A stretch of 64,000 nucleotides of DNA from Chlorokybus atmophyticus (GCA_009103225.1 RHPI01002619.1:54212-118211); one strand, 5' to 3'. Counted from the first letter of the stretch, positions 3,381 through 10,805 are shown. A program made the numbers and translations. The notes: generated from the letters alone by a model not told the origin.

Positions 3381-6300
3381 ATGGGGGGCATTACAGATGC
3401 AGGGCCCCGCTGCTGCTGGCAGCTCCTCCTGCTGGTGGTCCTGGTCCTGTCCAGCAGGCAAGTGCTCGCTGCGGACGGGTACCCCAGGCTTGAGACAAGC
3501 AAGGAGGCCAATCTAGCTGGTCGCAAACCAGGTGTGTGTGTGTGCGTATGCGTGTGCGTTTGAGATGGGGGGAAGGATGGGCAGGTGTTTATTAGGTGCA
3601 CCCTACAAGTTACACTGCAGCACTGGGTGCTTGTGCAGACAATAGGTCGATTGTGTTTGTCACACAAGTAAGCCAGTAATGCACACTGATGCAGCCAGTA
3701 CAGAACTGCACTCCTAACTGTGAGTTCTGAAATTGCAAACTTGTTGCACACGTGCACCCTTCGTTTTGACTTTGTACATGTGCCCCTATAGTTGAAAAAT
3801 CTGAGCAGAACGGCACACAGCATGTTTGTTTGCTGTTGCACATTGCGCTCCTCACAAGGATGCATCAGTGTACATAAGCATGCACAGGCGCGCGCGCACA
3901 TAGCAGCATACTCCTTTTGTACACACTTAGTCACGCACCTACGTGCCCAAGCAGATGTTGTTGTGTGCACATACAACAACATTCAATTGTACTCAATTGT
4001 ACTCGCCCCTTCTGCAGGCGGGTGGCTCCTGGCCGCTGGCCTGCCAGCAGTATACGGCATTGACGCTGCGGAGGCAGCAACGGTGGCGTCGGACCCGCCC
4101 GGCGCGCAAGTGCGCAACCCGCGTGATTGGATCGTTGTGTGGCGTGCAAAGGCAGGACAGATCAAAGCAGCCGCCAAGGAAGCCGCTGAAGCTTGCAACC
4201 TGGTGCGTGCATGATGAAAAGCCGTAAGCCCCATGCTTGAGTAGAAGGCAAATTCTTGCTGCATGTTGTGTGCAGGCCAAGTCAGCGACATTCAACAACT
4301 TCAACGGTACCTGCAGCTTCACCTACAGCGGGGTAATTCAGGGCCACGCCGTGTCATTTGATGGAGCCAACCTCATCTCTATGCTTCAGGTCCAGATGAC
4401 ACACTACTAGGCTTGATACCTGCAGGCATTGTCGTCGCATTCGTTTGCTTGCATGTTGCCATGCTTGTGGACATCTCTTGGCTCATGCGACCGTGTTGTG
4501 ATTAGACTTATGCTTCATCGGTGCTGTATGCGGAGCGAGACGGCGTAGTCAATGCTACTACGTTGCAGGTATGCCACCAAACTCACACAGTCAGACGACT
4601 CTATATGACAACACAACTACGAGCGCTGATATTATGCATGGGTTCAGACAGATCCAGACTGGGGTTTGGACCGCATAGACCAGGCGAGCCTACCGCTTGA
4701 TGATGACTACAACTGGAATAGTGATGGCAGGGGCGTGAACGTGTACATCTTGGACACAGTACGTGACCCTCAACAGTTAGTCATTCGTGAGGATCTGAAC
4801 ACGTAACTTGATCAAATGGTACCTGTGTGGTTTTGTCAGGGCATCCTCCCCACGCACACGCAGTTTTTGAACTATGCGGGGACGGCATCACGCGCTACGC
4901 CGTGGTACGATGTGATAAACGATGCAGGCGTCGGGTATGGCATCGACTGTCACTCCCACGGCACACAGTAAGTCTATCAGCCAGCCTCAAGCCCACGCTT
5001 ACGCCGACAGAGTCAGATGATCTAGTGGTACCACAAGTTGGGCTGTGTGAGTGAGGGCACATTCGTTGCACAACACATTGCTTCTTACCAGTATTGCCAA
5101 CATGCATCACTTTTTTGCGCACAGCTGCGCCGGGACTATAGGTGGGCTCACGTACGGCGTGGCAAAGAACGTCAACTTGTTTGGAGGTGCGACAGGAACT
5201 GTGGACGTTTGATTGGTGAATGTTGCTCGCATTGGTGCGGCAATTAACCTGTAACTTGGGCATGTGTTGCAGTTAAAGTGCTCGCCTGTACTGGGGGGGG
5301 CTCGTTCTCGGGACTCATTGCTGGCCTGGACCAAGTGCGGCTATATGGCGTGAAACCTGCTGTGGCCAGCATGTCCCTTGGTGGGGTCACAACCATTCAG
5401 TCTGTGGAAGATGCAATTTCAAACCTCTACGCAAGGCAAGATCTTTGCCCCCGCAATAACACGATGCTGAGTGTGCACGTGCATGTTTCAATTGGGGCGG
5501 TTTTGCGGGTTGTGGTACAGCGTCTGCCTTATTGAGACAGTAGTCAGACGAGAAAAGTGTGCTCACCTTCATGCTCGTGTTGCAGCGGTATTCTCTCAAT
5601 TGTTGCGGCGGGTAACGACAACCATGATGCGTGCCTAAACGAGCCGTCAAGGACGCCGCTGGCCATAACAGTTGCGGCTTCAGACATCGACGACACCCGG
5701 GCTTACTTCTCAAACTATGGCTCGTGCGTGGACATCTTTGCACCAGTAAGCCTCTGCTCAGGGTGCCGCTCTTGAGACACACACGTACATGTCTTCCATC
5801 ATTTATGCTGATGTTGTTGGACAGGGAGTTAATATCATGAGCAGTGTCATCGGCAGCGACACCGCCACAGCCGCATACAGCGGAACCTCCATGGCTTGTC
5901 CTCATGTGGCCGGCGTGGTGGCATCGTATCTGGGTGCATACCCAGACGCCACTCCAAGTGCAGTCACAAGTGCGTTGCTCTCGGGCGCGAGCACAGACCA
6001 GATCTCTGATGTTCAAGCCAGCCCCAACCTACTTCTGTACTCGACATTGACGCCTGCATTGACTCCCTCCAACCTAGTCATTGTGAGTGTGACGCAAGAA
6101 ACTGATACACGCTGTTTGCAGGGCCATTGTTGTGCTTGCTTGAAAGACAATGTTGTTCTTGCAGGTAACGCCAAGCACGTTAGCGATTGTGGAAGGGGGC
6201 AGCGCGACGGTGACGGTAACATTGGGCTGGCAGCCTGGAGACGTCGTGTACGTGACCATGTCGATGAATCCTCGAAATGAGAGTGAGCAGCAGCTGGTGA

Positions 6301-9300: not shown

Positions 9301-10805
9301 GCGGGACGATGACGCGCAATGTATCCTGCGTGGGTTCGAACGGCATCATCGCTCCCTCCAGCTCCCTTTGCCCAGGCTCTCAATCAACATCCTCAGCGTG
9401 CAACACGGCCGCGTGCGACCCTTGCGCCAACCAACCATGCTCAGGCCATGGCCAATGCAGAGCGGGAACTTGCCAATGTGACAGCACGCGCAAGGGACAG
9501 TTCTGTGAGACTCCTGTCGCGTGCGATGGGACTCTCGATGCAAATGGCCAGTGCTGCAAGACAATCACGGACCAAAACGGCAAGTGCTGCGATGGTGCCA
9601 ATGCCGTGCTAGACAAGGAGGGGCAGTGCTGCGCAAGCGGCCACGTGGATGTTTGCGGCGTTTGCAACGGCATTGCCACCGTCCTCGACGTGTTGCGCGA
9701 ATGCAACTGCACCACGTTCTTGGATCCCAAAGGCGTGTGCTGTCACGGCGGGATCGTTGACAAGTGTGGCGTGTGCGATGGCGACGGCTCTTCATGCCGC
9801 ACAAAAGTTGACATGGACGTCAATGCCGACCAACCGACAACCACTGTCACGATATCTGCTGTTGATGACGCGTTTAACGCCACATTACAAAACTACATAG
9901 CCAATGCACTTAGCGTGTCAAAGGAGTACATTAACGTGACAGGCATCACACCTGCAGTGGCAACCGGAAATGCAACTCGCAGGCTCCTTGCAGCAAGCCA
10001 GTTCAACATCAACTTCGTTGTGCTCCCTGGTGCGCCGCTGCAATCAACAGGTCAGATAGTTAGTTCACTGAACCAGGCCGCGGCGTCCAACAGCAGCAGC
10101 GGACTGAGCGTCGCAAGCGTTGGAGAGGTGCAGACGTCAGGCGTATGCGGCAACAGCCAATGCGAAGCCAATGAGCCCTGCCAAACCAAGTCGAGCACTG
10201 ATTGCTGTTTGGGAGACTGCCCGTTCGTGCTGCAGACCTGTCCGGCTCCACCTCCCAGCACGCAGGAGTGTGGCAACAAAGGAGACTGCTTGAGGGCCAG
10301 CGGCGTGTGCAGCTGTTACCAGGGGTACAGCGGGCCGGACTGCGGGAGCTGCGACACGGGGTACTACCGTGACACGCAGACCCAGACCTGCAAGTCTTTG
10401 GCCAGTATATATGTAGCCTCGCCGCCACCATTCCCACCTCCACCTACCCCTCCATCGCCAACCCCACCTCCACCCCCACCACCATCTCCTCCAAGGACGT
10501 CCCCGCCACCACCCACAGTAGCGAAGGCGCCTCCGCCAGCAGCGCTTACACTGGTCGAGAAAAGCAGCAGCAAAGTTGTGGTGGCCGCCGCGGCGGGAGG
10601 CGGAGGGGCGGTTGCTGCAGCTGCCGCCCTCTTCTTCGGGTATCACATCAGCAGAAGGAGGCGGCGACAGAACGTGAGCATGATAGGCTCAGTCCCACTC
10701 GGAGCTCAGGCTGGTGCAGCTACCATGTTGCAACCGTACAGCCCGCCAGCTACCACACCAGACAATGGTTCTCGTCCTCGGATGTCTGCACAGCTGCTGT
10801 CTTGA
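3381..10805 (+). CDS. Multi-exon type-I membrane subtilisin-like serine protease (S8A, proteinase K-like) with I9 prodomain, Ig/Calx-beta-like module, extensin-like Ser-Pro region, 4 TSP1 repeats, EGF/Cys-rich region, TM and short tail (copy A)
   Basis: Signal peptide exon 3381-3531. Exons spliced by eye give the catalytic motifs VYILDTG (~4740-4845), HSHGTHCAG (~4950-5130), AAGND (~5605) and [11 protein letters not shown] (~5885). TSP1 motifs of the type CSxxCGGG lie at ~8575, 8850, 9090 and 9270. The last exon 9054-10805 contains EGF motifs, the hydrophobic stretch [25 protein letters not shown], then RRRRR. An N gap (7006-7858) falls inside the Pro-rich exon. Confidence 0.88.
7006..7858. 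other. Assembly gap (N) within the extensin-like exon of subtilase A
   Basis: Run of N flanked by CCN-rich sequence. Confidence 0.98.

Follow-up and report, generated by a model that had tools for sequence, protein, structure and literature searches.

A probable membrane-anchored subtilase with thrombospondin and EGF modules in Chlorokybus atmophyticus and its relatives in green plants

We analyzed a stretch of 64,000 nucleotides from Chlorokybus atmophyticus (GCA_009103225.1 RHPI01002619.1:54212-118211, here referred to as the window) and focused on the gene at positions 3381–10805 of its + strand. It is highly probable that the product of this gene is a type I membrane protein from a conserved and uncharacterised green-plant family, in which a proteinase-K-type subtilase zymogen and a beta-sandwich are mounted on a cassette of thrombospondin type 1 (TSP1) repeats, EGF-like modules, an SEA-like domain and a transmembrane helix. 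We document its domain content, its intact catalytic residues, its family membership, the vertical inheritance of the family and a lineage-specific Pro-rich stalk. The protease half and the TSP1 half of the protein meet in an assembly gap; judged from sequence, the two are very likely one gene, because a gap-free paralogue in the same window and more than ten full-length orthologues carry the fusion. A previous sequence-only reading of this DNA had listed a signal peptide, an I9 prodomain, an S8 domain, an Ig/Calx-like module, SPPPP tracts, four TSP1 repeats, EGF and CGVCxG repeats, a membrane segment and a tail, and all of these modules are indeed present at the positions assigned to them.

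Results

Gene model and protease head

We read the region 3000–11200 in its three translated forward frames and obtained a 19-exon model on the + strand, from the start ATG at 3381 to the stop codon TGA at 10803–10805. The exons 5' of the gap are located at 3381–3531, 4018–4202, 4276–4389, 4506–4568, 4648–4758, 4840–4967, 5125–5186, 5273–5435, 5586–5745, 5825–6082, 6165–6282, 6355–6444, 6538–6636 and 6713–7005, and those 3' of it at 7859–8286, 8382–8418, 8519–8630, 8710–8985 and 9054–10805 (all +). The readable product amounts to 665 amino acids before the gap and 867 amino acids behind it. Splice sites and phases are consistent across the model, with AG at every acceptor and GT at every donor except for GC at 5436 and 6445. 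Splicing 8286 directly to 8519 was considered and rejected, as the TSP1 exon would then fall out of frame; the 37-nucleotide micro-exon 8382–8418 was kept because without it the Pro-rich exon behind the gap and the first TSP1 exon would not be in one frame. The presence of two GC–AG introns in one gene (AAG/GCAAGA at 5436 and CAG/GCAAGC at 6445) is a side observation; the paralogue has GT at 17 of its 17 donors. Pfam was run exon by exon, and domain-level queries and local comparisons were used instead of the whole spliced protein. Modules missed on single exons were tested by profile–profile and structure comparison on orthologues.

The modelled frame was also compared with a contig from a relative. 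In the TSP1 region, this contig and the window differ at 30 listed sites, 21 of which are third codon positions, and counted by codon there are 16 synonymous versus 10 non-synonymous changes. Such a bias is what one expects of coding sequence under constraint. A contig of a relative about 92% identical to the window skips 86 nucleotides (8949–9034), a stretch that overlaps with the 3' part of exon 18 and with most of the next intron. This skip does not match the splice sites of the modelled intron (8986–9053).

The N-terminal half of the product can be divided into four modules. First, exon 1 (3381–3531) begins with the first ATG of the open frame and encodes a signal peptide with a hydrophobic core (VLA/AD; hydrophobic segment at residues 11–33), and the first exon of the paralogue is its equivalent in the same phase. 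Second, exons 2–4 (4018–4568) encode an I9-like propeptide that is conserved with the paralogue and the orthologues; in an hhalign profile–profile comparison, the pro-region of the family matched bacterial I9 regions with 92% probability and an E-value of 6e-7. Third, exons 5–10 (4648–6082) encode an S8A catalytic domain of proteinase-K type, recognized by PF00082, PDB matches and motifs. The triad consists of Asp207 (codon 4753–4755, motif ILDTG), His248 (codon 4957–4959, motif HGTH, intron-split) and Ser401 (codon 5888–5890, motif GTSMA), and the oxyanion residue is Asn336 (codon 5614–5616, motif AAGN). Both the Asp-His-Ser order and the oxyanion Asn are as required for the proteinase-K subfamily of S8A. 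Peptidase_S8 (PF00082) exceeded its cut-off of 21.8 bits on exons 9 and 10, with 31.4 and 35.8 bits, respectively. Fourth, exons 11–13 (6165–6636) encode a beta-sandwich (Ig-like) module of about 100 amino acids, whose exon lengths of 118, 90 and 99 nucleotides compare with 121, 90 and 99 nucleotides in the paralogue, in the same phases.

In a PDB sequence search with the catalytic exons, aqualysin-1 (4dzt), keratinase (5wsl) and proteinase K came out on top, and the structures of cucumisin and SBT3 ranked far below these proteinase-K types. Land-plant SBT1–5 proteins are pyrolysin-like S8 enzymes whose S8 domain is interrupted by a PA domain and whose C-terminus is Fn3-like. The S8 domain studied here has no PA insertion and does not follow that layout. 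The sequence-only reading had assigned the domain to the proteinase-K/aqualysin type rather than to the land-plant SBT type, which is borne out by the PDB ranking and by the work of Xu et al. (2019, PMC6713707), where a proteinase-K cluster is present in green algae and bryophytes and absent from vascular plants, and extra domains are unmentioned.

The model of the homologous Klebsormidium region (predicted local distance difference test score, pLDDT, 87) contains two beta-sandwiches, the second of which resembles collagenase-type PPC/CBM domains. As for the "Ig/Calx-like" module, the beta-sandwich is supported by this model, but the label "Calx-beta" was dropped, as the model gives a generic beta-sandwich only. 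A PPC-like beta-sandwich follows the Ig-like module, ahead of the TSP1 repeats, in the paralogue and the orthologues. It is missing from the 3381–10805 gene, where exon 13 is spliced straight to the Pro-rich exon. Pfam on single short exons gave no match in the I9 region, none in the Ig-like module and none in the PPC-like exon.

The C-terminal cassette

Four TSP1 repeats (8574–9416) are distributed over the exons 8519–8630 and 8710–8985 and the start of the last exon. TSP1_ADAMTS (PF19030) reached 45.4 bits on 8710–8985 and 55.7 bits on the last exon, and TSP_1 (PF00090) reached 22–25 bits. Four CSxxCGGG motifs were counted, and the repeats have the six cysteines and the CSxxCGxG core of this domain. 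An intron interrupts the first repeat at a position shared with the paralogue (GGGxM/TRTV). A regular-expression search for W..W (WxxW, the C-mannosylation motif) found none; the TSP1 repeats hold WxxxxW or a single Trp.

The repeats are followed by an EGF-like module and then by CC/CGVCxG cysteine-rich repeats (9417–9797), in which the cysteines are invariant across 58 homologues; EGF_Teneurin remained sub-threshold on the EGF-like module. We further considered an AlphaFold model of the gene's own C-terminal 402 amino acids, built with 58 homologues (pLDDT 84.6, and above 90 over 9417–9797). In this model, residues 128–241 (9798–10139) form a beta-alpha-beta-beta-alpha-beta juxtamembrane domain, a highly confident fold prediction, of the putative SEA-like or membrane-adjacent kind. 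Foldseek gave weak matches (E-values of 1e-3 to 1e-5) to the SEA domain of GPR126 and to the SEA-EGF regions of mucin-13, mucin-3B and mucin-1, together with further weak matches to HEG, the membrane-adjacent domain of cadherin-23 and the ectodomain of Arabidopsis ALE2. For the SEA regions of GPR126, mucin-13 and mucin-1, the E-values were between 1e-3 and 1e-4. A language-model feature search likewise pointed to SEA mucins. The SEA-like assignment of 9798–10139 is probable but unproven.

A Cys-rich segment (GVCGNGxCE) and a second EGF-like domain follow at 10140–10406, with conserved columns and a Pfam EGF_2 score of 25.1 bits (cut-off 22.1). Next come a second short Pro-rich tract and a linker ahead of the membrane (10407–10574), a transmembrane helix found by hydropathy scan with an RRRRR stop-transfer signal behind it (10575–10637), and a cytoplasmic tail of about 55 amino acids with the stop codon (10638–10805). 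The transmembrane segment is also present in the paralogue and the orthologues.

A gap-free paralogue in the same window

When the last exon of the 3381–10805 gene was used as a query in a homology search, it led to a gap-free paralogue at 36416–28631 on the − strand. Its full exon model comprises 18 GT–AG exons and encodes 1868 amino acids with a single stop at the end. The order of its modules is signal peptide, pro-region, S8 domain with intact triad, three beta-sandwich exons, PPC-like domain (32868–32317, −), Pro-rich exon, TSP1 repeats and a C-terminal cassette like that of the 3381–10805 gene. The Pro-rich exon (32246–31385, −) is an uninterrupted stretch of 862 nucleotides that links the protease half to the TSP1 half. 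The two genes have intron positions in common, and their products are 48% identical over the head and 57% identical over the C-terminal part. As the paralogue holds the whole architecture in one gap-free frame, the fused form exists in this genome without assembly doubt.

The fusion in green plants

We scanned 1.84 billion representatives with the C-terminal 462 amino acids of the 3381–10805 gene and obtained 849 matches. Local comparison with the N-terminal halves showed that 4 of the 849 carry both halves, namely a Tetraselmis astigmatica transcript (MMETSP0804, 2321 amino acids), a Trinity transcript from EukProt (1649 amino acids), a protein of the liverwort Calypogeia fissa (CAM6098029.1, 1878 amino acids) and one of [Myrmecia] bisecta (KAK9829530.1, 1335 amino acids). 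Pfam S8, TSP1 and EGF domains are present in each of them. A profile of these four proteins then retrieved members in Marchantia polymorpha (MPTK1_3g13090), Physcomitrium patens, two Riccia species and Sphagnum, as well as in Klebsormidium nitens, Closterium, Trebouxia and one lycophyte fragment, and the architecture was verified in seven of the members found in this way. Altogether, more than ten full-length orthologues with S8, TSP1, EGF and a transmembrane segment are available, two of them from transcriptomes. Thus the S8 domain and the TSP1-EGF-transmembrane part are seen in one polypeptide in the paralogue and the orthologues; in the 3381–10805 gene the join falls in the unread gap.

An S8 phylogeny, which the sequence-only reading had named as a check, was built from 14 green members and rooted on 10 sampled bacterial S8 proteins. 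The green members are set apart from the bacterial ones with a support of 99 in the Shimodaira–Hasegawa-like approximate likelihood ratio test (SH-aLRT), on the very branch where the tree is rooted. The two window genes group as sisters (support 92) near the base of the green group; embryophytes cluster with Klebsormidium and Closterium with full support, and the two trebouxiophytes make up a further group. The order inside the green group follows plant phylogeny, and the basal place of the two window genes fits an early-branching streptophyte alga. The occurrence from chlorophytes to mosses, together with an S8 tree that matches the species tree, indicates that the fusion predates this alga and was inherited. 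By these sequence comparisons, the fusion is ancient and was passed on by vertical descent within green plants.

The convergent assembly in an alga that the sequence-only reading had inferred is not supported on this basis, since chlorophytes and streptophyte algae as well as liverworts and mosses share the same combination of S8, beta-sandwich, PPC, TSP1, EGF and transmembrane segment, with an S8 tree following the species tree. Nor is novelty of the architecture supported, as it was already visible in public annotation, where the Klebsormidium nitens member is named "Subtilisin-related protease with thrombospondin repeats". That reading would also have been overturned by an architecture both common and characterised in green algae; it is common in the green lineage, but no characterization was found. 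Its statement that no protein of this architecture is known to be characterised agrees with the literature searched, in which we found none, nor a published function for any family member. Searches of the literature on subtilases and thrombospondin in green algae, streptophytes, Chlorokybus and plant and algal model species found no protein with S8 and TSP1. Moreover, open-literature searches found no mention of TSP1 repeats in embryophytes. The bryophytes Calypogeia, Marchantia and Physcomitrium encode proteins with four Pfam-significant TSP1 repeats.

It was also observed that the TSP1-EGF-CGVC-SEA-like-EGF-transmembrane cassette is widespread as a C-terminal unit in public eukaryotic and metagenomic proteins (the 849 matches), where its other heads are quite different and include CUB, PKD and Kre9/KNH-like domains. 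From these sequences, the cassette behaves as if it were a shuffled membrane-anchor module.

The Pro-rich stalk and the assembly gap

The head and the TSP1 repeats are separated by a Pro-rich SPn stalk, whose exon contains an assembly gap of 853 N (7006–7858), the length being an estimate only. The part before the gap (6713–7005, +) has 98 amino acids with 84% Pro and is open into the gap. The part behind it (7859–8573, +) consists of the exon 7859–8286, the micro-exon 8382–8418 and the start of the exon 8519–8630, and has 172 amino acids with 66% Pro. Frame 1 is open from 6697 to the gap; behind the gap, frame 3 stays open as far as 8327 and contains no Met. The 270 readable stalk residues contain 24 SPPP+ motifs (SPPP or SPPPP). 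Tyr is absent from them, and no extensin cross-linking motifs (YxY, VYK) were found. Judged by its composition, the stalk is an SPn rod of the algal hydroxyproline-rich-glycoprotein (HRGP) kind without extensin cross-linking motifs, and the gap most likely hides only further Pro-rich repeat of a single exon.

The linker from the head to the first TSP1 repeat has 52–65% Pro only in the two window genes; across the rest of the family it has 4–11% Pro and 75–280 amino acids. As far as sequences can tell, the extensin-like SPn stalk is specific to this genome among the family members compared. A long Tyr-free SPn rod is inserted between the head and the TSP1 repeats in this genome, and the PPC-like domain has been lost in the 3381–10805 copy. 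This gene is, on its domain content, a variant of an annotated yet unstudied green-plant family, set apart by the HRGP stalk and the absent PPC-like domain.

Further copies and differences in the window

Besides these two genes, a third and partial copy at 23207–24394 (−) was detected by tblastn. It covers the C-terminal cassette only, from the Cys-rich repeats to the tail, and is 65% identical to the 3381–10805 gene. Small pieces at 25334–25459 (+) and 25661–25795 (+), on the strand opposite to the third copy, resemble a pro-region and a transmembrane segment with tail. The partial copy and the small pieces look like remnants of further duplications.

The paralogue shows some peculiarities of its own. 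A long (ATC)n microsatellite (33720–33790, −) is located in the intron that splits its Ser-containing S8 exon; the 3381–10805 gene has no intron at that place, and the paralogue in turn lacks the intron found between exons 6 and 7 of the 3381–10805 gene. The cytoplasmic tail of the paralogue (28634–29100, −) has about 200 amino acids, versus about 55 in the 3381–10805 gene, and contains an Asn10 run and a PPPPPY motif, neither of which occurs in the tail of the latter.

Discussion

Alternative explanations

Several points count against a single, expressed membrane subtilase of the kind described. First, the flanks of the gap are one base out of frame at the nominal length of 853 N; as that length is merely estimated, the offset says nothing on continuity. 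Second, no transcript or read bridging the gap was found in public sequencing runs, the best of which holds at most 28% of the sampled words. The runs found hold 7–28% of these words and derive mostly from relatives at 90–95% identity, with some contigs containing introns; as they come from relatives and include unspliced sequence, they do not demonstrate expression of the 3381–10805 gene. Joints across the gap reported by contigs were discarded as unreliable, since their sides were 23–26 letters long and lay in Pro-rich repeat. Third, the micro-exon 8382–8418, a model inference from frame logic, is the weakest piece of the gene model. Fourth, Pfam I9 stayed below threshold, with 15.2 bits on one orthologue (cut-off 21.2) and no match on the others. 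Finally, the SEA-like assignment of the modelled domain leans on weak Foldseek E-values, and no autocleavage motif of the G/SVVV type was found in 9798–10139. The claim of one spliced open reading frame stands as very likely by virtue of the paralogue and the orthologues, but the join in this copy is not bridged by the runs found.

The unread gap, with frames that differ at its nominal length, might conceal the border of two adjacent genes, that is, a secreted subtilase with a Pro-rich C-terminus and a separate Pro-rich TSP1/EGF membrane protein that starts in the unread stretch. The TSP1/EGF/transmembrane cassette is common without a protease, carrying CUB, PKD or Kre9-like heads among its 849 matches, and the copy at 23207–24394 consists of the cassette only. 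However, both flanks are open Pro-rich coding sequence on one strand, with neither a stop ahead of the gap nor a Met or signal peptide behind it, the paralogue 18 kb away is fused and gap-free, and more than ten orthologues, two of them from transcriptomes, are fused as well. We therefore regard two genes as improbable.

A scaffolding chimera, in which the assembler joined the N-terminal and C-terminal halves of different local paralogues over the gap, would equally speak against one gene, and we give it just as little credit. Strand, order and Pro-rich composition agree on either side of the gap, and the degree of divergence from the paralogue is similar for the two halves (48% and 57% identity). 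At least three family copies or fragments in both orientations are present in the window, and low-complexity Pro-rich repeats are classic places for mis-joins. The PPC-like domain, present in all other full-length members, is missing here, but its loss is located upstream of the gap at the intact exon 13–14 junction and so is not due to a mis-join. The least credible alternative is a decaying duplicate of the intact paralogue that is no longer expressed as a protease: the lost PPC-like domain, the 37-nucleotide micro-exon needed for the frame, the truncated third copy as a sign that decay occurs in the cluster and the undemonstrated transcription in the runs found are outweighed by about 1530 stop-free codons in 19 exons, by intact catalytic residues and conserved cysteines throughout, and by differences from a close relative that are concentrated at third codon positions.

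Comparison with known systems

Taking the 3381–10805 gene as one membrane-anchored subtilase, its closest counterparts are the green-plant TSP1-subtilases of Klebsormidium, Marchantia, Physcomitrium, Calypogeia, Myrmecia and Tetraselmis. These have the same order of pro-region, proteinase-K-type S8, beta-sandwich, TSP1, EGF, CC/CGVC repeats, juxtamembrane domain, EGF, transmembrane segment and tail. They possess an ordinary short linker with 4–11% Pro, whereas the two window genes have a stalk of more than 270 residues with 52–84% Pro. The enzymes of the proteinase K/aqualysin-1 subfamily of S8A (4dzt, 5wsl, 2b6n, 1ic6) are the best matches of the catalytic exons and are alike in triad order and motifs, but they are small and secreted, without TSP1, EGF, stalk or membrane anchor.

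The protein had also been called "ADAMTS-like", which holds as an analogy of layout only: a zymogen protease is followed by ADAMTS-type TSP1 repeats (PF19030), with presumed action on the extracellular matrix. ADAMTS proteins are secreted and combine a reprolysin zinc-metalloprotease with disintegrin-like, Cys-rich and spacer modules, whereas the protein here is a serine protease with a membrane anchor. No Pfam match to reprolysin (M12B) or disintegrin-like domains was obtained on the exons or the orthologues scanned.

The nearest characterised functional precedents are VLE1 (sporangin) of Chlamydomonas and VheA of Volvox, hatching subtilases with a membrane-tethered S8 domain that act on the cell wall (PMC9351486). 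VLE1 differs in topology and domain set: it is a type II membrane protein whose prodomain is volvocine-specific and whose C-terminal domain is lectin-like, and it has no TSP1, EGF or HRGP stalk (PMC9351486). It was not among the top matches of the family profile search.

Animal mucins (mucin-13, mucin-3, mucin-1, HEG) and GPR126 resemble the C-terminal part in having an O-glycosylatable Pro/Ser-rich stalk, a ferredoxin-like juxtamembrane domain, EGF, a transmembrane segment and a short tail. They have no protease head, however, the structural matches are weak, and the SEA autocleavage motif is lacking here. Extensins and volvocine HRGP rods have repeated SPPP/SPPPP in common with the stalk. 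In the present protein the tract is free of Tyr and serves as an internal spacer of a membrane enzyme, not as a structural wall protein.

Proposed mechanism and implications

The following steps are inferred from known I9/S8 enzymes, HRGPs and TSP1 repeats. The propeptide would fold and then be removed autocatalytically, as in other I9/S8 enzymes. Putative hydroxylation and arabinosylation would turn the stalk into a stiff extended rod; with about 0.3 nm for each of the 270 or more known residues, this rod would be at least 80 nm long. The protease head would thus be held in or beyond the wall, anchored at the plasma membrane, and may cut wall or matrix proteins locally. Wall remodelling, hatching or adhesion, the roles proposed in the sequence-only reading, are putative. 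The TSP1 repeats are putative matrix-binding or glycan-binding units, and the SEA-like domain of the model is a possible shedding point.

We tentatively suggest, as a possibility that we would not favor at present, that plants from chlorophytes to mosses and liverworts, possibly also lycophytes, keep an ancient plasma-membrane TSP1 serine protease, a counterpart of animal matrix-remodelling proteases that was lost in seed plants and is mounted here on a wall-spanning glycoprotein rod. If this is true, the protein could be a surface sheddase or an enzyme of wall integrity or cell separation, with the SEA-like domain answering mechanical load.

The family matters more than the single locus. TSP1 and EGF/SEA-like units are usually deemed hallmarks of the animal extracellular matrix; here such units sit on a bacterial-type subtilase and appear inherited across the green lineage. 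The family also provides a concrete case of a shared anchor cassette that seems to receive shuffled enzymatic or adhesive heads, and the lineage-specific extensin-like stalk would be an example of how a protein is adapted to reach through the wall. As knock-outs are routine in Marchantia and Physcomitrium, both of which have kept the family, it becomes testable how early plants and their algal relatives remodel or sense the wall from the plasma membrane.

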